64,000 nucleotides of DNA, from the NCBI GenBank assembly GCA_904063045.1, contig CAJFCJ010000004.1, forward strand, positions 861,713 to 925,712. The letters are read 5' to 3'. Origin of the DNA: Dimorphilus gyrociliatus (taxonomy: Eukaryota; Animalia; Annelida). Shown piece by piece: positions 1-29,700 of the stretch. Under the pieces are notes generated by a model, which worked only from the letters and a program-made list of their open reading frames with translations, made no database searches and was not told the DNA's origin. Position 1 is the stretch's first letter. Every line of letters starts with the position of its first letter. The translations under genes were made by a program, and so were the position numbers.

Positions 1-204
1 CCAAGGGTTTACAACTTTTAAGATATAAACTTGACACTCTCTAATTGTATTCAAACTTGAGCTCTTTAGACTATCTTTTTGTAAGATTCGCTTGAATCTC
101 GGTTTTAAGACGTTATCAAAATTCATAGGGTACAAAAAAAATTAGCTAATTGTGTTTTCAATAACAGCCGAAAACATCGAGGAGATGGGTAACTAGTTCA
201 AATA

Positions 205-3200
205 TCACAATATCCAATTTTGTAAGAGATCGATAAGTCTACCCTGATCTCTCTCTCCTATTGAAAATTTCTTCCTCCAATCCCAATAATATGCGCTCAT
301 CATCGCAAAAGAATAAGTAGATCCGATAGTTATTAAGCTGAGTATGGATAACAATGATAATCCACTTAAACCATGCCCCATTGTACATCCGCCGGCTATT
401 CTTGCCCCCAAAAAGAGAAATATACCACCAATGAACGCGTCAGATGCCTTTACACCTTTCACAATTTGAAATGAGTTTGATAAAGATGCTGAGTAGTAAG
501 ATCCTCCCGCAATGAAAATTGTGAAAACAATCTGTAAAAAAATTGAAATTGCTAAATCAACTAACTAGTAATTTAATATTTTAAGCCACAGGAACAGCCC
601 GAATCTGTCCTAGAAAGAAGACGTTTAGAGTATTGATTTGCCTTGCACTTTTACAAAATGCTATTATAGATTTTCTAACAGGTCAGATTGTTTTTGGACA
701 ACACCAAAGTTAACAGATAATGGCAAATCACTTAAAGAAATATTTCCTGCTTTGAAAAAAGATTTCCCATTTGAAATTTTTTTGTATGTTGTTTTCTTTA
801 CATACCTTGTTGTTGAAGGTGGAGGTAGGGGGAAAAGACATTGAATTTGATAACATAATGGTTCTGGATACAACTCTATAATAGTCAATATTTGTAGAAT
901 TTTGTACGATTGCGACAATTTGGTTTCTCAAAATTTGCATAAAAATGACTATTTGTAATCAGTTTACTATTATTTAGTCCATTTATTCGTGGAAAATTTG
1001 TCGAATCTAGCTAAAGAGTGCGCTTATTTACTAACTTTTCACTTAAATATGTGATCATGAAACAAATAACAGAAAGATTGCCTAGCCCCTTTGTCAACTA
1101 TTGCAATGTTAGGATTAATTCGATGAACCAAATTTACCTTTAATCTGGTTAAACAATTACTAATTTTATACCTGGATATGTTAAAGAGTTTTTAATTGCT
1201 ATGAATATCTTTCGAAACAAATAATTATTAAAGGATGGAAGCTTGATAAATTTCAAAGTAAATCTCTCAGTTCGTTTTTCATACAAAAAACAATGAATAC
1301 TAACAAAAAAGGTTGTAAAAAACACTATCCTTTTACAATAAGTACAAATGGATATGCTAAATTCATAAGTGTAAAAATAGCTGGATTTTACAATGATAAA
1401 CCTGTGAAAAAGTATGGATTATTTACTCGTTTTAAACTAGTAAGCGATCAAGACGATTAAAATCAAGAGGCAAATCTAGGCTACTGATATACGTAAGTAG
1501 AATTCAATCTTTGAAACAAAAAACATTACTGTTAAATAAAAGAAGAAATAGAATAAATTTAATTTGGAAAATTAATAAGAAAGAAAACATTTGAGATAAC
1601 TGTGTTTTATTTGACATGCACACGATTTTAGATCAATAAAATGCTTTGAAGCCAATGAAATTTTATATTGATTGATATGCCTGTACTCAGATTATCTTTT
1701 TGAATCCTTTTTTTGGTATAAGAGTCTCTTTTTCGCTTCTATTTCAGAAGTCGATTTATATAGCTCGAAATATACAGAAAAATGTAACAAATATTATAAC
1801 TTAATTCACATTAATGTTTTTTAATTTAACATTTTCTGAAGCTGTAATAATTAAATTTCCTAGTGTTTTGTACTTAATATTCCACTCTCCAGCAGATAAA
1901 ACCCCATCCTTTCCTCTCAATCCCTTCTATTCTTATATTAAAGCATGCAATCGGTATTTATACTTACAGGCCACACTGCATCAAACCAAGTATTAAATCG
2001 TTGACGTTCTTGGCAAAGTTTTCCCAAAGGTGTTTTACGAAGAAGTTTCGAGCAAATTATGGTAAGATTCTTCGAACAACCCATTAAGGTATCCACAGAA
2101 AACATATGCAAAACCTAAAAAGGATATTTTTAAAAAATAACGTTTTTCAAGTTTTCAATTAAAATAATAGAAAAAAAACTTATTCAAACACCTGAAAAAC
2201 ACCAACACAAACGCCAGCAGCGTATGGTGGCCAGGCCCTCATATGAAAGACAGTTGGAGCTCTCGTGTTCCTTGCCTTGTATACCTAAAATGAAAAATCA
2301 AAATAAAGCATAAAAATCTCCAAACGATTAATTCTGTATTACGCTTAATTCTTGTCGCCAAGAACTTAACATTTCAAAAGCAACAACCAACATCCCAAAC
2401 ATAACAGCAAGTGGTAAGCTTAGTCCAGCATAATTTCCAGATTTATACCTATTCCAAAATATGTCAATAAATACCCTACATCATATACACAAAGTAAAAG
2501 TATTAAAAATCATGAAACAGGTTATACACGTGCGCAAGATATTTAAGGTTGTCAACTTTCATGAAAACATTACCTTTATTACAACTTTAAAGGTAGATCA
2601 AATGTATTAAAACTAATATACTGTATATATATATATATATATATATATACTGTATATACAGTATATTATATCACATGAAGTATAAATTAATGCATTATTA
2701 AGGATATATATATAGCATTTAAAAAAAATAACTTAATTAAACTATTTATATTAATAACAACTGTTGAATTTGAAAGAGTTAAATGGGCTTATATATAATT
2801 TGTTAGTCAACTATAAAAATTTCTTATACTGTATATACTATATTCCAAATATAATTCTATAGTTATTGTTTACGTTCGAACTATTACTTACATTTGTTTA
2901 TGTTTAAAAATTCAATAAAGATCGGTTATTATTTGTTTTCATATATATCTTTAATTACACTTTCTGGCTTGCAATTTATTATCATGCTTGATCTTTCTGC
3001 TAAAAGTTTAGCCACTCAATATCAATAATCTCGTTGGTGAATTGCAAAAATTGGATTTATTATTTAATGTTACTATTGTCTTTCCAAAATATTAATTGTC
3101 GTTTTAGTTTTAAAGACTATAAGAAAGCATATAACAAACTTCGAAAAAAAATTCTCTTTTGCCTCATATTACATGTTTTACTATTGTGCTAAAAATGTTC

Positions 3201-4502
3201 AATGACCTTTAAATTGGAGAGTACTTTTACCTCTTTTTAATCATAAAACTTCAATTATCATGTCTACGATGCACAAAGCTGTCAACTACGACTCAATACC
3301 ATACTTTTTTTTGCTTAATAAAAACTCAGGCTAGTGACCTTTAATGAATTTAATATGATCCTTTAAATGTAGATGTCTATCACTTCTATACTCACGGGTT
3401 GGTTGGCGACGATTCACTTGTTTCCAAGTGCTTCCGCAGGGGAGTGATGAGACAGTAGATTAAAGTTCCAACACAAGCACCATACACAACAAACACTAAT
3501 AAGAATTGAATTGTTAATAGATACCAAAATAAGTTCAACACTCTCTTACTTGAATTAGGAACCATTGCTCCCACTTGAGACCATATTGTCATTGGGCAAG
3601 AACCGGAAAGAGAAAATCCAATACCCATCAGCATACCACCAAAAATAGAAGAAATAATACCTAATCTCGCAACTTGTAAATCTCGGAAATAGTTCGAAGT
3701 CACTCGTAAAAATGCTCCATTTGAACCGGAAATAAATGTGGATAAACTTAGAAAGAACATTCCTGAAATAGTAAATATTTTAGAGAGAATTTGAAATTAT
3801 CTTATTTCATTCAAACCAGATGCAATTCCAGAACAGGTAAATTTCAGAATTGAGCTTGTTTTTAACAGCATCTGATGACGAATTAATTTCGGTTCGTGCA
3901 CTGTCGAAATAAAATATATTAAATACATTTTTACACAAAAATAATCATTAAAAATATATGTAAGAAAGATATGTAGTATTAACAATGCTAAAATATACTA
4001 TAACATACACTTTACAGATAGTGTATGTATTTCATCAGACAAGTATCTTAATAAATAGATACTTTTATGATATAACAAGAATTTAGCATAAAGAAACAGT
4101 ATAAATTCAATACAATGAAAGAAAAGTGTTCGATTTAAACAGGATATTTCTTTATGTTAAGCAAAAGTGTAACCAAGTAAACGACTAAAAATTCACGTTC
4201 TATTTACACGATCTAAATTATGCATAAAATTTTGTAAAGGACAATTGTTTAACATTAAATAAAGATTAAAGGAAATAAAAATGAAAAAGGCAAAGTATAA
4301 TGTTCTATTCAAGAAATATTGAATTTAGAAAGTTCCACAAAAAATGTTGATTTTTTCCTTCTTATTTATATACACAATTCAATATTTTTTACACCGTCCC
4401 CTGTAAAAAAGAGTGTTGATTACCTCGACATTTTTCAATAACAAATCCGAGTACAAAACCAGATAAAATAATGATAAATGTTTTACAAATGGAGCGAATC
4501 AT
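205..4502 (-). CDS. YeeE/YedE-family (Sulf_transp, TsuA-like) sulfur/thiosulfate transporter, ~382 aa, 8 coding exons
   Basis: Exons 4502-4424, 3900-3817, 3762-3550, 3495-3396, 2448-2343, 2284-2192, 2114-1968, 531-205. All introns are GT-AG and phase-compatible; total 1149 nt with no internal stop. Translation shows family motifs: SGFVLGFVIEKCRVHEPKLIRHQM, GGMLMGIGFSLSGSCPMT, AWPPYAAGVCVGVFQ, GGIFLFLGARIAGGCTMGHGLSG, and many TM segments. Family assignment is from motif recognition, not a database search. Confidence 0.9.
2624..2649. repeat. (TA)n microsatellite
   Basis: About 13 TA units seen directly. Confidence 0.9.
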
Positions 4503-6672
4503 CTTGGAAAAACTTATATTATCGCCCGTTATTAGAATTTTCCGTTTTGAATTATTTTGTCATTCCTCTGCACGATCGTCAGTTCGCTCCGATTAACTTT
4601 ATCGATTGATTAATCAAAAGATTAAATAATTTGCGAGATTTGCATAATCGACTGACTACCCATAAAGAAGTATTCTGGCAATCAGAGCTCTGTTAACTTT
4701 ATTAAATATTTTTTTATAATTTTTAAAAATTCAATATATATTTTTATATATAATTTTATGTGATTAACGAAGACAATTTTAATCATTAATAATATTTTTT
4801 TTAGAAATTTGCGATTATGTGATGTGATTGCTGATTCACTGGATTTATAACAAAAATTTATTGTATCGCCAGAGCTGATTGGTTGGTAGGAAATTCCACA
4901 GAAAATGCTCTCACAGTCTACGCTTAGAATTGCATGTGGAAGTTTATTGAATAAAATGTTCCAGCAAGAAATTCAAGTCAATTAATTTGAAATCGATTAC
5001 AATTTTAGAGGGACTTGATTATATAATTATCAATCCTCTCTTTTGCTGATTTATTTGGTAAGTAAAATCTTTAATAATGGATTAATGGGCGTAATCGTCG
5101 ACGCTATGATAATTCGATTATAGACCTTAAAACGTTCCACGTGGTAAAACCTCAATTTATAATCTTTCAATAAATGTGTTATGTGTCAACTGACAAAATC
5201 TTGAACATGGACTACCATAATGTACAATTTCTGAAAAAATGGAGCTAGGGCTGATATTGTCTCAAGCAGGTTCTAGCAAGTTTTTGTTGGATTACTGCAT
5301 ATTTTATATATAAAAAGAAGTGGATCTGGATAATCTTTTCTGATTTATGATTATAGCTTCAAATCCATGCTTTATCGTCTTTTAAATTTCTAACCGATTT
5401 TGTTGGAATTTATAAATTATTATAGTATTCGATTACAGCCATCGATCTTCATTGATGGAGCTTCACCGTTCCTTGTTTTATTCTTTAGGCTTTGGTCATA
5501 ATATATAGTTAGCGATATATTACACATTAATAGATACTTTATGTATCAGGACAACACGAACTCATGTACTGCGATAAAACGTAAATACATCAGCCTCAGA
5601 CTAATTAATATATGCCACTGGAAATATTACCAATTTAATTTAATCGATTTGTTACAGTCTATATAAAATATTTTTTAATACTACATATAGTGGTGACAGA
5701 TTTTCCCCATCCTTATTATCATTTTATCCGCCTATTTCCAAAGTCTAACTTATTCAACACAGTTGTATACTAGAATCGATACGGGAATTATCTATCAAAT
5801 CTATAATGTGAGTTATCAGACTCTTATCATTTAAAAAAAATTATTGAGATGTAATGATGGTTAATATTAAAATTAGTTATATGTGCTTTATTCGGTTTAT
5901 ATATTTTTTGTAGATTATATGAATAACATTGTATTGATGACCATGAAGTATAATTCATTTAATTCAAGTGGCCTTATCCATTGAGCTGCCTATTTGTATT
6001 TTCGCTACAAAAGTCTGCCTTAGACGATGTTAGACAAAGATTTCCAGACCATTCTGAATTCACTGCTTCAAAAGGATATATTTGGGTGATATATTCAAGA
6101 TTACGCTTACTTTTAAATTGGTGACCATAGTTGAGTCTTTTCAGTATTGTGTTTGTTATGACAGGCCTATCTTAGATAGTCATATGAAATGGCTGAAATA
6201 TTCACCTAACAATAATATGGCTTTTATGTATTTTTTTGGGTGCTTGTACCTAAAATTTATTGCGCTGCTATAATATGTTTATTTAAATTAAGTGAGACTT
6301 TGAAACAATAGTCCATCTTCAAAGATGAAGTTCGTTGAACTTATCGGCCTGAATTTGATAATGTTTGATATTCATTATAGCAAAAAAACTGACATACTTT
6401 TAAAAAAATTTACAAGAATAGGTTAAATTGTTGTCCTATAAAACAAACAGCAAAACTAATTAAGGATATCAGAGAAAGTGAGTGAGATGTATAAGTAGAA
6501 AGTAATGATAAGAATTCAATAATTTTATACATCTTTTTATCTAGCAATCTTTTCCCGGGGTCTTAATGCAGAAATTGCTTTCTAATTGAAATATTACAGT
6601 ACATGCATTTACATATCGTATGTCAATTTATTAAACGTAAGATCCATGTTACCTAGAATATATGAGCCAGAT

Positions 6673-6925: not shown

Positions 6926-15579
<8,654 letters not shown>

Positions 15580-20024: not shown

Positions 20025-22677
20025 TCTACATAAATCTACTTCAAAATGACCCTTATTTTTCAATAAAATTCATTAATTTGCATGAATTCACTTATTAGCA
20101 GTTTTTAGTCAACTTTATATATATTTAACAGATAAATGTCTATTGCATGACATTTTCTAAAATTAACATGCTTAAATAAAGAAGGTCAAGGCTTTTAATA
20201 CACTTTTTTTATCAGGCATAAAAGTGTGATTCAAGGTCTTGTGAGACTTAAAAAAAGAGAGATAGTATTTTAGATCGATTAGAGGATAGAAATCCGTACG
20301 ATAGCTTTTCTATCTGTAAAAGGATTTCTATATAAAACATACTCTATTCTGTTTGTATCCTTGAGGGCATTTAAGAAAAATGAATGATATTTTAAAAAAA
20401 AAGAGAAAAAAAATATAATGTTATAAACCTTCGCGAAGACTCAGTCCATAGGGTACTGGTGTTCCAGTACTTGGAGCAAATGCAGGATCAAGTGAATCAA
20501 TATCAAAACTCATATGAATTTTCTTATTCAGCGTTGGATTTATTGCTTCTATGGTTCTTTCTAGAACGCATTCCATACCGAGTTTGTCAATATCTCGCAT
20601 AGTAAACGTAGTAATATTGTATTTGTCGATAATGTATCTTTCAGCTTTATCAATGTCTCTCACTCCTACAAAGAAAAAGGTCCATTATTTTCATATGCTT
20701 TCTCTTTATACAATACTTAATAATTCCTTCCTATCCAAAGAGAGAAACCTCATTTATAATTTGTTATAATCAACACGAAAAAAAAAAGAAACGCTAAGCA
20801 TTGCAAACTCTATCAATGTATTTATGAATTCATTTGATATAATTAGAGAAAGATGAGCCGAAATAATAGTAAAAGAATCATTAAATTAGATAAATTCTTA
20901 GACATTTAATTGAGTTCATGAGATATATTTTAGTGACTATCATAGTACAGTCATGTGTGAAATAGTAAATGAGAACACATGTCTGATAAGATTAAGGAAG
21001 ACTAAAGTACTTTTCGACTAAAATAAATTAATTAATTATTAATATAGGGATTTACCCTAAATTATGAGAGGAAGAAAATGCGATTGTCTTGAATAAATAT
21101 TGAATTTCTATCATTTCGTATTCAATAAAATAACTAAAAATTTCCGGTGTATGTCATTAACAAACCTATAAAAGCGATGTCCTTTACGCTTATGCATGGT
21201 TTTAACCACTCAAAACCCGGTAATTTTGGTACGTATGGTTGAAGCTCCTTAGTTAGAAAAGATAGTGGCATGCCATGAATATTCCCACTAGCAGATGTTA
21301 AAGGAGTATTGATATCTGGATGTGCATCAATCCAAATAATAGCTAAATCATTTTCGACCTTCGCGTGGCCATGTATTGTAGCAACAGACATACTATGATC
21401 CCCTCCTAAAGTGACTACAGTTTGACCACATCTTAATATTTCTTCAACTTTATCGGATATCTGTACCAATGTCATGAAAATATTTTTAGTTAATTAAAGC
21501 TTGTAGACCCTATTTTCAGGCTTATCATCTCAACCGTAAATTGACCCTACAATAAGACTACTAATTAAATATGTCAAAACCTATCTGGCCAACAGTTTAG
21601 AGTCTATTTCTTTTTATTTTTATGTCTTGAAATGAAAGAAGACAATATACTCGAAAAGGCACTTTCCTAAATTCGAATCTGCGCAATGCGAAAGTTAATT
21701 GAATTTGAAGTTTTTTCTCTACCTGTTTTGCAGCTTTTCCAATTGTCCTAGGTGTTTGTATATTGTAGATTGCTGTATCATTGGGTACAGCTTCAAATTT
21801 TAGATCGCCATGGTCAATAACTTCGTGACCCATTAATGACAAGTTCTTTATGAGATTCACATTTCTCAAAGCTTCTGGAGCATACTTAACTCCTGGTCTT
21901 GGCTGAAAATGTACTCTATTTAATTCTAATAGCTTGTATTTCATTAATAATAGATTAGGGGAATTTATTAGTCACACTAAGCGTTCTTTTTCTCCAGGTT
22001 AGAACAGTATAATTTAATTGGAAGATTTTCAAGAAAATAGAAAGTTAGAAAGAAAGTGAAAAGTTCGTTATAGCCTAATTTAAGTACAATTTAAAATTGC
22101 AACAGTATAAATAAGAACTCTCTCTTCCAGTTCAATAGTGAATAGTTCAAAATGAAAGTGTTATATAAGAATATACTTTTGTATTGAATAAGTAACAAAC
22201 TGTAGTAAAAGAAAGAAGGGTGCTTTTTATATAAATAAAACTCACAGCACAACATAATAAAAATATAAGATTCATTAAGATAATAATCAATTTTTATCAA
22301 AATTTTATTCTCTGTTTTTAAAATTATCGTTAGATTACATAATGAGTTATTGCGAAATTCTCTTCGATATAAAAACAACTATATATCGTTACCTGTTTAC
22401 TATAATAAAATTTATCACTTTCTTTAGTACTTACCAAAATATTTTCGACTCTTATTTGTGTTTTGTAATATCAAATATTTAAGATAATCTACCAAGCAAT
22501 TTATAGAAAATAAACAACAAATAATATCAATTTTTAATAATGCGCCATAAAAAAACTGAATATACTCACTTGACCTTTATTAAAAGGGGCACCGAATACA
22601 CCAATGGGTCGATTTGTTGAATAGTATCTTCTACATATATTTATGAATCTTATATTTCTTGAATTAAATAGAAACAT
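19369..22677 (-). CDS. ARG: Arginase (binuclear Mn ureohydrolase) with probable mitochondrial presequence, ~337 aa, 5 exons
   Basis: Exons 22677-22570, 21902-21723, 21460-21166, 20665-20429, 19562-19369 (1014 nt), all GT-AG and in phase. Metal and catalytic motifs are intact: GGDHS, DAHPD, SGNIHGMP, SFDIDSLDP, VEINP. The N-terminus MFLFNSRNIRFINICRRYYS is Arg-rich with no acidic residues. Confidence 0.95.
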
Positions 22678-23632: not shown

Positions 23633-25025
23633 TTAGATTTTTGCTACTATAAGAACAGCCGAGGGAATGAGCCCCAATTGTGTTAGTGGCTTTTCCATAT
23701 CTTCATCAGTGAAAACTTTCTTTGGAAAAGTTGTCATAAGTGAAAAAGGACCTTCACCATCAGTCCTATTAATCTCAACGAATAGCCTCACGGCTGCTAA
23801 ACTCTCAGTAGCTTTGAAAGTGTGAGTGAGAGCTGAACCATTAGTAAGGCGAATTTGCAGACGACATTCGGCATACTCCTTCTTCTCTGGGGGTTCTACC
23901 ACAACTGGTTTAGCCGTTACGGAGTTTGAATCAGCGGAAGCAGAGAAATCTTCTTTTTTAGCTTTCGCTGCTCTAGCTTTCTTATCTTGTTCAATTAAAT
24001 CCTTTACTCTCTGTCTGGCTCTCTTATCTTCCTCCCGTTCCCGACGTTTCTGATCTGCTATTCTTTTCATTTCATCTTCTTCGAATTTTTGTTTAGCCTT
24101 TAGTAAATCTTGTCCCTGATGTCGACGTGATTTTTCCTTATTTTTCCTCTCCTGTTCTTCCTTTTCATCGCGCTCTTTTCTTCTGGAAACTAATCTTTCC
24201 TTTTCGAGTAGAAACAGTTGTTTAATTGTAATGTTATAAAATAACATTAAAGTAGAATAATTGTCATTATGAAAATACAAGTTATTTTCATAAGAAAGAA
24301 ATGTTCATATTTTGATGAATTTTGATTCTTTTTTCTGAATAACAGTGGTTCGTACCTAGTTACTTATATGAAATATTTCAAGTATATTAAGAGAATTAAA
24401 CTACTTTTGCCTAACATATTACAGTTTTTTCCATTTCAAATATCTTTCATTCTTTACATTAGATATGAGATGAAAGACTTTTGAAAAAAAAAATTTTAAA
24501 CCATCTTTTAAAGGAAGTCTTTTTAGATCTTAGGAATATATCGTTGAATAAAAGATATGAATAATTATCATATCTGTTACCAACGTATATACTGTATATA
24601 AGGAAGACCTACTTGTATTCTTGCCAATTGCGCTTCTTTTTCTTCTTTCGTCAAAGGTCTAACCTCTTCGGTTGATTCACTAAAGTTAGCATGTTTTGTT
24701 CTGATGGCATGAGCTTCGGCATCGCTTGGTGAACGAAAACTTTTACCGCAATCGTCGCATGTGAGAGATTTTGCTGACGCATCTGCGCCTTCCTTTTCTA
24801 TACTACTTGCTTCTGTTTCTTCAGTTTTATCATCGTCTTCTTCACCATGCTCCAAAATCCAATCCATAGCAGCTTGTACACCTCCATTGTTCGTCTTTAA
24901 GAGGGCTTTTCGGCTGAAATAAAACGGTTCGTCTTTAAAGAACACAGCGAAAATTTGCACATAGTTACTTACGCCTTCTTCTCAGGAAAGCCCATATCAA
25001 TCAAAGTTTCTAAGTCGTTAGGCAT
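23633..25025 (-). CDS. UBXN1: UBX domain-containing protein 1 (UBA, C2H2-like Zn finger, coiled coil, UBX), ~306 aa
   Basis: Exons 25025-24973, 24913-24613, 24199-23633 (921 nt). UBA: LETLIDMGFPEKKARKAL...AAMDWILEH. Zn finger: CDDCGKSF...AHAIRTKH. Charged coiled coil. UBX: CRLQIRLTNG...LMTTFPKKVF...LGLIPSAVLIV. The exon 3 acceptor is weak but in frame. Confidence 0.92.
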
Positions 25026-26788: not shown

Positions 26789-29700
26789 TTAATCAACGCC
26801 GTCAAATCCTTCAGAGTTTTCAATGGCAATAAGTAACTTCTTTCTAAGTTCATCGTAGGTGGTGTAGGCTGGTAAATCAAGTCGATTGAAACAAGTATGA
26901 GCTCTTGGCAGGTCAGTTGGTAGACCCCAGTGCTCTATGGTGAATAATTGAGGACCGTTACTACCATATAGTTCTTTGAAGCCATTCATGGGCACTCTAG
27001 AAGTTCCGGTAACAAATTGTAGCAATTTGGATCTAGTTTCATTATTAAATGAATATACAGTTTTCCAAAAGTTTATTATCACTGGATGATTAGCGTTATA
27101 ATCTCTCCTATACTGACTATGACTCTTCCAGTCTTGAACATCAATATCTTGCAATCCTGCCAACAGTAATTCTATTTCGTTAGCGTCGAAAATTTGCAAA
27201 TTAGTGTTAGGTATAATTTCATTAAAACCAGTTAAAAAACTGCTCATTTGTTCTTTAACTCTACTAGAAAATCTCCAGTTTATGACATTTTTTATATAAT
27301 CCAATTTATTATCTTCTGAAACTGGAATATCTTTACCACCCGGTATTAGCTCAGTTTCTTCTGTTTGACCAAAAACCTCTTCAACGATAGAAAAACTTAA
27401 AACTAAACATTCAGGATCGTTCTCCTCAATCCATTTTAAAGAATTATAATATTCAGAATCTACAGATTCCATATCATCCAAAGTAATTGACTTTCCAAGC
27501 ATCATTTTATAGAAAGGCCTAATAAAATAACCATCTATCAGTTTGCCATGGAAAACTGCCATGCCACAGACACGACCAATGAATTTAAAATACGATAAAT
27601 GTTCTGGATTTGCAACTCCTGATTTGGGATTAATCTGCAGTGTATAATCATCAATAGCCGAATACTCAAATAGACCATAATATGGATTGAACATTTCTTT
27701 AGAAAGTAAATAAAACCATTCTCTTGATACCCCGCCATAATCTAAACCTTGTTCATCATCAAACTCTATCCATAATCTTGTTTTTAGTAGATCGGTTCGT
27801 TTTACACTCATTATGCATCTAAAAGAATCTTCTAAAATACTTTTTCTTTTAACCTTAATATCAAATTTATTGGGCACATTGGTTGGTTTTCGTAATTTAG
27901 CCCTAAAGTTATCATATTTTTGCTTATAACTTGATGAGTATTGCAGTGAAGGGCCATTTAGTAATTTTAATCGAGGGTCTTCCCACGTTGTTTTTTTAGT
28001 GTTGTGATCTATGAAGAAACTTCTACCATCTGTATGAATACGTTCTTCCCAACCTTCCGGAAGTTGACCAAGACGCTGAGTTAAATCCATGTCTTTACTC
28101 GCTCCCATAGTAATTGATCTTGCCCGGTTTTGTCGTCGAGGGTCTTCCCAACTTGTCATTCTCATATTGTGATCAACATAAAAAACCTTTCCGTTTGGAG
28201 CCTGGCTTTTAGTCCAACCGACAGGAAGGGGTCCATCATCATCTTCAATAGCTATATTATCAACACTGTTGCCGAGCGTATGCAGTCTCTGTATTGGTCC
28301 AGCAGCTGCTGCTAGAGCATTATCATCAGTTCCTGATATAGACAATGTATCTTCATGACTGACACATCGCCGTTGCCTGAAATTATCTGCCGCCTGCCTT
28401 CTTTCTTCATCTGCCGTTTGAGCAGTTGAATCAGCTGAAGGTCTTTGCCAAGTAGTAATTCTATTTGCATGATCAACATAGTAGGTTCTACCAATATTAT
28501 CAACTTTTGATTCCCATCCAGGTGGTAGAGGTTCACTATCATTTTCAGTGGGTAACTGCCAGTGAGTTGATCTTGTTGTGTGGTTAATATAAAAGCGTCT
28601 TCCTCTACCATCAATACGACATTCCCAATTAGGAGGTAGTGGATAGTCTGTTCTAGGTGGTTGTTGAGCTGAAGAATCTTCGCCATTATTTGATTCATTC
28701 TGATTTTGAGGGAATGAATCTTGCATTTCTTGTCTTACAGAATCGCTTCTAACTATCTCCCAATCTCTGGAATCCTCTTCAAAATCTCTAGTAGCTTCAG
28801 GGACGTCATCATCGTCTTCTATATAAGCTAAAATAGAGAAGGTTTGTATAGCTCTATTTAAATTTCGATTTAAAGTATCAATAAGAAAAATAGGAAAAAA
28901 CTTAAAATATGCAGTTTATATATAAATATACTGCATGTGAATGTTTATCGGTTCTTATACATATTTAGTTAGAAAAGAATGCGAGAAAAATCATTTTTAT
29001 TAAGCATCTGTCCATCTATCTGCTTGAGATTATTATCAAAAATAAAAAAAAGTTATAAAAACAAACTGCAGTTGTGTTGTTCTATGAAAATTAACATTAT
29101 CAAAAATATTCCATACCTAAATATAACTCTAAGTTGCCTTTAACTCTTGATTTAGATGTTCTTGGTCTTAACAGATACTGCCTTGACGGTTGAATGTTTT
29201 CACTATCCTCTGATTGTATACAAGCTGTAGACAATTCTATTTCAACAAGACCCAGAAAATCATCTCTTGTAATTCTATTTTCATCAAACACCTGAAATGA
29301 TTAAGTATAAATAACAATATCTAATTTATTTAAAGTAGCATTACAGACAAAATTATTGTATTTTTTTATCAAATATATATTAATGTATACTCTCTATATA
29401 AGGTACATTTGTTAATAATCCGTGTTATTCTGAGCATATGGTTCAGAAATTTTTTAACTATTATCTATTAATTAATATTTTATATTATATATATACTTTA
29501 TATATATAATTCGTATTCAGCCTTACTTCATGGCGCCATACGTAACTTTATATCGAATTTATTTTATACTAATATATATATATATACTTTATATAGAACA
29601 TACATAATGTATAATACGTAATAAGACATCCCAATAAAATATTAAAATAATACATTTTTATTAGAAAACATTATGGGTTTCTTTTTCGAAAATTAACTTT

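Follow-up and report, generated by a model that had tools for sequence, protein, structure and literature searches.

A divergent YeeE/YedE-family gene of the annelid Dimorphilus gyrociliatus: evidence for old vertical inheritance and a predicted role as a sulfur-anion conduit

How does a gene of a membrane protein family best known from bacteria come to stand, interrupted by introns, in an animal genome, and what might its product carry? The question is raised by a window of 64,000 nucleotides from the annelid Dimorphilus gyrociliatus (contig CAJFCJ010000004.1, positions 861,713 to 925,712), near the start of which lies a minus-strand gene for a YeeE/YedE (Sulf_transp) protein. We consider it likely that this gene encodes a vertically inherited eukaryotic member of the family, predicted to form a conduit for a small sulfur anion. 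An earlier note, made from the sequence without database searches, had called the gene an animal YeeE/YedE sulfur transporter, and its claims are taken up where the evidence bears on them.

The coding model runs from 4502 to 205 on the minus strand and comprises eight exons with a coding sequence of 1149 nt, or 382 amino acids (Table 1). It is built from splice-site motifs and translations of the minus-strand frames. In gene order the introns measure 523, 54, 54, 947, 58, 77 and 1436 nt, and all seven have GT-AG ends. An in-frame stop lies upstream of exon 1 at about 4560, with no earlier ATG. The figures given in the earlier note (eight exons, about 382 residues, introns of 54-1436 nt) are reproduced exactly by the rebuilt model, and the two Gly-Cys loop motifs that it described are present as SGSCP (Cys110) and AGGCT (Cys323). 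Read from the sequence, the N-terminus corresponds to the first transmembrane helix and bears no sign of a cleavable mitochondrial presequence. Intron 4 also contains a (TA)n run at 2614-2661, flanked by the inverted copies ctgtatata and tatacagtatat.

Two public sequencing runs match the gene: X1, a 2024 RNA library labelled 'coral metagenome', and X2, for which the kind of library is not on record. Their contigs were placed on window positions 101-4700 and attest to presence, not to expression level. All seven predicted introns are reproduced as joints in spliced contigs, with CT..AC ends on the plus strand. X1 supplies four joints, including that between exons 1 and 2, and X2 supplies six, five of them on a single 752-nt contig; three are common to both runs. 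The gene is transcribed and correctly spliced; spliced transcripts, whose absence would have told against the call by the earlier note's own terms, are present at every predicted junction.

The same runs hold two further observations. In an X2 contig placed on 2784-3338 the final 14 letters agree with the end of exon 4 and suggest a minor splice form, in which the exon 4 donor is joined to an acceptor at 3338 across a 57-nt GT..AG intron (3339-3395) and a stop follows after three codons (SLA); the depth of this contig is 29.8, vs 496 for the main form. Two of the three X1 contigs on window positions 1706-4506 are at least 99% identical to the window gene and the third is 95-99% identical. The worm or a very close relative probably lived in the coral sample or aquarium from which X1 was made.

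Family scores were taken exon by exon, and the joined 382-residue model was compared only locally (phmmer, blastp, MAFFT and IQ-TREE). Exon 8 reaches 40.2 bits against the Pfam Sulf_transp model PF04143 (cut-off 27) over profile positions 233-302, and exon 3 scores 26 bits over positions 44-84, colinear with the exon 8 match. The profile check that had been suggested is therefore positive, and exons 3 and 8 together place the product in the YeeE/YedE family over both halves of PF04143. Precomputed matches to the same model exist for all full-length relatives. On the NCBIfam TsuA and YedE models overall, the exon pieces score 14.6-27.5 bits vs cut-offs of 350-645. A feature search of the ESM Atlas with exon 8 returns solely short bacterial Sulf_transp clusters and says nothing beyond family membership.

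Structural comparison agrees with this assignment. A profile of eukaryotic sequences aligns over both halves with StYeeE, the Spirochaeta thermophila protein (PDB 6LEO; E = 1.6e-12). The AlphaFold model of P0155, the closest full-length relative (38% identical to the window protein), has a predicted local distance difference test score (pLDDT) of 88.7 and a predicted template-modelling score (pTM) of 0.86. In Foldseek this model retrieves only YeeE structures at E values up to 0.001, with probability 1.0 and template-modelling (TM) scores of 0.71-0.74 by target. The YeeE fold of two homologous halves with re-entrant loops is thus predicted for P0155, which serves here as a proxy for the window protein.

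StYeeE passes thiosulfate along three loop cysteines, of which Cys91 and Cys293 are essential (PMC7449682). The third, Cys22, is dispensable in StYeeE, where C22A is tolerated, whereas the equivalent E. coli Cys25 is essential (PMC7449682). Cys110 and Cys323 of the window protein, in loops LB and LD, align with cysteines that are kept across the eukaryotic clade and with those of 6LEO. Loops LA and LC are unusual. They read EKCRVHEP and TLMGCSKN, and each contains an extra cysteine unique to the window protein (EKCRV and LMGCS); most relatives, in a range that extends from alphaproteobacteria to animals, have EK[GS]RVFEP and TLGGSSSY instead. The result is one cysteine per pore loop: Cys25, Cys110, Cys238 and Cys323. 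The three conserved cysteines of strict TsuA are not all present. The earlier designation 'YeeE/YedE (TsuA-like)' is upheld as to the family, through Sulf_transp and the loops, and is doubtful as to TsuA in the strict sense, with no cysteine at the first conserved position. At about 16% identity to StYeeE and in a separate clade, the window protein is unlikely to belong to strict TsuA.

A HMMER search with exon 8 yields 611 matches. When the joined model is compared with them locally, full-length relatives of 360-420 residues stand out; their names were obtained by cluster look-up and a word search of profiles. Named homologs come from at least seven animal phyla as well as choanoflagellates, fungi and protists. 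They include annelids (D. gyrociliatus DgyrCDS12685, Capitella and Lamellibrachia), brachiopods (Lingula, two copies), molluscs (oysters, Lottia, Dreissena, unionids, Littorina and Pecten), echinoderms (Asterias, Apostichopus, Amphiura, Antedon and Lytechinus), the hemichordate Glandiceps, Priapulus, and the sponges Corticium and Halichondria. Outside animals there are the choanoflagellates Salpingoeca and Monosiga, chytrids, two ascomycetes, a cryptophyte, Pharyngomonas, Dracoamoeba and Stygiella. The matches include none from vertebrates, arthropods or nematodes, though this does not establish absence. The best matches are 38-41% identical to the window protein, with Capitella at 39% (blastp) and the top contig protein at 41%. 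DgyrCDS12685 is 31% identical and is therefore regarded as a paralog. Relatives already carry RefSeq or GenBank labels such as 'thiosulfate transporter TsuA-like' (Apostichopus XP_071834399.1) and 'UPF0394 inner membrane protein YeeE-like' (Asterias XP_033630966.1). YeeE-like proteins in eukaryotes receive a one-line mention in PMC11073785, and a review of the YeeE family covers prokaryotes only (PMC11582611). The window gene adds a divergent member to a known family whose eukaryotic branch is annotated already.

In the careful IQ-TREE run of 62 rows, with support given as ultrafast bootstrap and SH-aLRT (Shimodaira-Hasegawa-like approximate likelihood ratio test), the window gene pairs with Capitella (95/84) within an annelid clade (100/99). 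This clade lies inside a protostome group with Priapulus, one Lingula copy and molluscs (93/88). A second paralog group unites DgyrCDS12685, the other Lingula copy and molluscs (100/100), and its sister is an ambulacrarian group (98/97). Outside the bilaterians stand choanoflagellates, a sponge and a protist, and holozoans are recovered at 99/94. This placement makes the window gene, in the annelid 'group A', orthologous to Capitella CAPTEDRAFT_222237. Its terminal branch of 1.52 exceeds that of the Capitella ortholog (0.29), that of the Dimorphilus paralog (0.49) and the median (0.4). In a larger quick tree the fungi stand apart from the holozoans and two long branches meet; on that evidence we claim neither opisthokont monophyly nor a firm prokaryotic sister group.

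Intron positions carry the argument further back. Exon maps of five homologs were rebuilt exactly from their genomic loci and set on one alignment with the window gene. Introns 1, 2, 3 and 7 fall at the same column and phase as introns of Lingula, Asterias, Capitella and/or the Dimorphilus paralog; introns 1 and 2, which flank exon 2, are common to Lingula and the paralog, and introns 1 and 7 also occur in the choanoflagellate Salpingoeca. Introns 4 and 5 have the same phase and lie 2-5 columns off in a poorly aligned stretch, intron 4 matching Capitella exactly. Six of the seven introns are thus common to other animals (four exact, two within 2-5 columns), whereas intron 6 (after residue 225, phase 0) is confined to the window gene among the six genes compared, and two widely shared introns are missing from it. 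Tree placement and intron positions both put the gene in the eukaryotic YeeE-like clade. Because intron positions and phases are common to animals and a choanoflagellate, there is strong evidence for old, vertical inheritance. The earlier note had left two origins open, an old horizontal acquisition or a retained eukaryotic lineage. The second fits, also in the intron comparison it had proposed, while acquisition in or near animals is at odds with the broad set of homologs, a tree that approximates species relationships and the old introns. Broad animal orthology with vertical topology had been named beforehand as grounds for dropping the novelty of a horizontal transfer, and with relatives already annotated that angle is given up.

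Several homologous gene models show peculiarities of their own. The annotated Capitella (KB307500.1; P0187) and Lamellibrachia (P0189) proteins lack the 28-residue segment of exon 2 (VFEP..IR.QM..) that is found in all other homologs, which is probably an exon skipped in the gene models. In the annotated Salpingoeca rosetta protein (P0186, locus L085) the last conserved loop is cut short behind GGCTS, and two tiny exons follow; the 3' end is probably mis-modelled. In the chytrid Siphonaria sp. JEL0065 a protein of 683 residues (P0202, flagged UNVERIFIED_CONTAM at source) combines Sulf_transp with the cyclic-nucleotide-binding domain PF00027 and, if the fusion is real, is possibly a ligand-gated member of the family. 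P0213 combines PF20398 with Sulf_transp. P0002 (1294 residues) is matched by exon 8 over 13 separate stretches at 24% identity; rather than a relative, it is probably a membrane protein that is repetitive or rich in leucine/serine.

Bacterial and archaeal genomes were scanned with patterns from the eukaryote alignment, a pattern-biased approach that makes any 'closest' relative provisional. Matches (L001-L080) come mainly from Alphaproteobacteria, plus a few Betaproteobacteria. The alphaproteobacterial relative consists of two adjacent half-size genes of about 180-210 residues each, the C-terminal half first and then the N-terminal half, as in Rhodoplanes (Table 1). Each half matches Sulf_transp, and the motifs EK[GS]RVFEP and GCTSGHG are common to these proteins and the eukaryotic ones. 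Eukaryotic genes are not arranged in operons, and the bacterial neighbourhood was considered as a clue to function. It was rejected: the genes scanned beside six loci include a pseudouridine synthase, a histidine kinase, superoxide dismutase, YajC, a Rieske oxygenase, ATP-binding cassette transporters and a photolyase, and none is sulfur-related or conserved.

The substrate, the direction of transport, the membrane location and the physiological role are what we infer from here on. By analogy with the bacterial structures, the window protein would be a polytopic protein of two homologous halves, whose re-entrant loops would meet mid-membrane and line a narrow pathway with Cys110 and Cys323. 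What passes along it would be a small anion that contains sulfur, most plausibly thiosulfate; sulfane sulfur, sulfite or selenium species are possible. A role could lie, for example, in handling the thiosulfate made by sulfide detoxification. Marine invertebrates turn sulfide largely into thiosulfate for detoxification, and our literature search found no paper that assigns an animal membrane carrier to thiosulfate. For these two reasons a eukaryotic YeeE-family protein is a reasonable candidate for a thiosulfate carrier, and it is reasonable to predict that the window protein transports thiosulfate or a related sulfur or selenium anion.

Several points weigh against a sulfur-anion conduit of this kind. 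Identity to StYeeE is about 16% at the level of structure, via the proxy P0155. The column of StYeeE Cys22 holds His in the window protein and Phe in the eukaryote consensus and most relatives. On NF041049 and NF052577, the NCBIfam models of TsuA, the exon pieces obtain 14.6-27.5 bits, and the whole-protein cut-offs of 645 and 400 are beyond the reach of pieces; more generally, the family scores come from exon pieces and the fold from a relative, not from the whole 382-residue protein. No YeeD/TusA-like match was found among the flanking open reading frames (ORFs) scanned at six alphaproteobacterial loci. A literature search turned up no functional study, and hence no transport assay, of any eukaryotic or animal YeeE-like member, as the earlier note had supposed for animals. 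Finally, the branch is long (1.52 vs a median of 0.4) and loops LA and LC depart from a form that is otherwise conserved, so the substrate of the window protein may differ from that of its orthologs.

Two alternatives deserve weight beside the predicted sulfur-anion conduit, and we regard both as improbable. In the first, the protein would carry zero-valent (sulfane) sulfur or a selenium species instead of thiosulfate, as has been suggested for YedE and PmpAB-like members. Exon 8 gives a weak match (18.8 bits) to the YedE/FdhT selenium model, and the eukaryotic clade, like PmpAB, keeps only the equivalents of Cys91 and Cys293, its nearest bacterial relatives being split pairs (PMC11582611). 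However, all such matches fall far below the curated cut-offs, and the bacterial halves, at about 180-210 residues vs about 130 for PmpA and PmpB, are not clearly PmpAB. Nothing in the sequence tells these substrates apart.

The second, equally doubtful to us, is that the copy is decaying or has changed in function, with the ancestral substrate lost and the paralog DgyrCDS12685 keeping the original role. This would account for a terminal branch several-fold longer than those of the Capitella ortholog and the Dimorphilus paralog, and for substitutions unique to this copy, two extra cysteines among them, in loops that otherwise scarcely vary from alphaproteobacteria to animals. Against decay, the open frame is intact, the transcripts are spliced and both essential-type cysteines are kept, while loop LA varies in other members of the annelid clade too (P0004, P0178 and P0179). 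A contig from a related species (L086), 77% identical in nucleotides including intron sequence, contains an ortholog of exon 8 with a conserved acceptor site. Between the two, exon 8 has a ratio of non-synonymous to synonymous substitution rates (dN/dS) of 0.17-0.24, and conservation is lowest at third codon positions. As judged from this exon, the window gene is under purifying selection.

Table 1. Features of the YeeE/YedE-family gene, its spliced junctions, neighbouring genes and one bacterial gene pair. Positions are those of the window unless a locus is named.
Feature	Position	Strand	Details
Exon 1	4424..4502	-	79 nt; ATG 4502-4500; first transmembrane helix (TM1) and loop LA EKCRV; unusual Cys25 codon 4430-4428
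Exon 2	3817..3900	-	84 nt, phase 1; codes HEPKLIRHQM and next residues
Exon 3	3550..3762	-	213 nt; loop LB SGSCP; Cys110 codon 3598-3596, StYeeE Cys91 equivalent
Exon 4	3396..3495	-	100 nt
Exon 5	2343..2448	-	106 nt; central hydrophobic helix LSLPLAVMFGMLVVAFEML
Exon 6	2192..2284	-	93 nt; AWPPY motif
Exon 7	1968..2114	-	147 nt; loop LC DTLMGCSKN; unusual Cys238 codon 2078-2076
Exon 8	205..531	-	327 nt including TGA stop 207-205; loop LD AGGCTMGHG; Cys323 codon 387-385, StYeeE Cys293 equivalent
3' untranslated region	101..204	-	X2 contig of 1406 nt, gapless over 101-531 and running beyond the analysed stretch
Junction of exons 1-2	3900/4424		X1 RNA contig
Junction of exons 2-3	3761/3816		X2
Junctions either side of exon 4	3495/3550 and 2446/3394		both X1 and X2
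Exon 5 junctions			both runs
Exon 7 junctions			X2
Junction of exons 7-8	531/1968		X2
Nuclear receptor (zf-C4 and ligand-binding domains)	7001-15579	+	DNA-binding domain split over two exons about 4 kb apart
Arginase	21134-21944	-	
UBX-domain protein	23633-24960	-	
Four-WW HECT ubiquitin ligase	26789-28726	-	single 645-aa ORF; an exact-sequence look-up finds no identical protein in the collection
Rhodoplanes gene pair	3037-3585 and 3619-4239 of locus L006		example of the alphaproteobacterial pairs

The surroundings of the gene are those of an animal chromosome. The guanine-plus-cytosine (GC) content is about 30% across the whole window, gene included, and the flanks hold a nuclear receptor, arginase, a UBX protein and a WW-HECT ligase, in agreement with the earlier statement that the gene sits among ordinary metazoan genes. 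That statement had been coupled with an argument against contamination, which was examined as a candidate explanation and ruled out on the introns in spliced contigs, the window-like GC content and the metazoan neighbours. In favour of an assembly contaminated by bacteria, or of a gene recently passed by horizontal transfer from bacteria to the worm or to annelids, one could cite the bacterial fame of the family and alphaproteobacterial gene pairs whose best segment is about 40% identical to the eukaryotic query P0004, but seven spliceosomal introns each backed by spliced contigs, a GC content equal to that of the rest of the window, metazoan flanks, six of seven intron positions common to Capitella, Lingula, Asterias and the paralog (two of them also to a choanoflagellate), a tree that tracks animal relationships and bacterial relatives in the form of two half-size genes in reverse order leave this explanation a negligible chance.

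A broader and more speculative reading concerns the age of the clade. The fused EK[GS]RVFEP type occurs in animals, choanoflagellates, chytrids, a cryptophyte, an amoebozoan, a heterolobosean and a jakobid. It is conceivable, if rather unlikely, that this type of YeeE is an ancient eukaryote-wide channel, and since the split pairs of Alphaproteobacteria are the nearest relatives found among prokaryotes, it might date to the mitochondrial endosymbiosis. Such a channel could be the thiosulfate or sulfane-sulfur carrier of eukaryotic sulfide detoxification, and the four-cysteine Dimorphilus copy could have changed its chemistry. As a genome finding the gene is ordinary: presence in eukaryotes has been published (PMC11073785), relatives are automatically annotated in many invertebrates, and vertical inheritance is indicated. 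The question of function, on the other hand, is testable in a small annelid, D. gyrociliatus, with two diverged copies.

Comparison with known systems sets the gene apart from each of its bacterial counterparts. StYeeE and E. coli YeeE (TsuA; PDB 6LEO, 6LEP, 8J4C and 8K1R) belong to the same Pfam family, share the fold of the proxy and its two halves, and have their Cys91 and Cys293 equivalents within Gly-Cys loops. The window protein differs from them in its low identity (about 16%), in the His at the Cys22 position (mostly Phe in the clade), in having no known YeeD/TsuB partner, and in being eukaryotic and encoded by an intron-bearing gene. SoxT1 and SoxT2, the YeeE-like sulfur importers of sulfur oxidisers, are likewise full-length family members with cysteine-dependent function (PMC11582611). 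These bacterial proteins have three conserved cysteines, and their genes belong to sox/shdr clusters, a context that the window gene lacks. PmpA and PmpB are two separate four-helix proteins of about 130 residues; the window gene encodes one chain of 382 residues with both halves and a central helix, and does not qualify as PmpAB. The alphaproteobacterial pairs, which are comparable with PmpA/PmpB, are two intronless genes, C-terminal half first and unfused, in variable non-sulfur neighbourhoods.

The closest counterparts are the invertebrate homologs. Capitella CAPTEDRAFT_222237, Apostichopus XP_071834399.1, Asterias XP_033630966.1 and Lingula LOC106173630 belong to the same eukaryotic clade and agree with the window gene in architecture and in intron positions and phases, at 31-41% identity over the full length. 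Among those sampled the window gene is the most divergent; two ancestral introns are missing from it, one intron is its own, and its LA, LC and LD motifs are altered. DgyrCDS12685 (P0157; 427 residues, six exons, locus L081 of 2255 letters) is the second D. gyrociliatus copy of the same family. Its first two introns agree with those of the window gene in position and phase, and two more have the same phase within a few alignment columns. It differs in belonging to the other bilaterian paralog group, with the second Lingula copy and oysters, and in keeping the canonical EKSRVFEP and TMGGSSSY loops.

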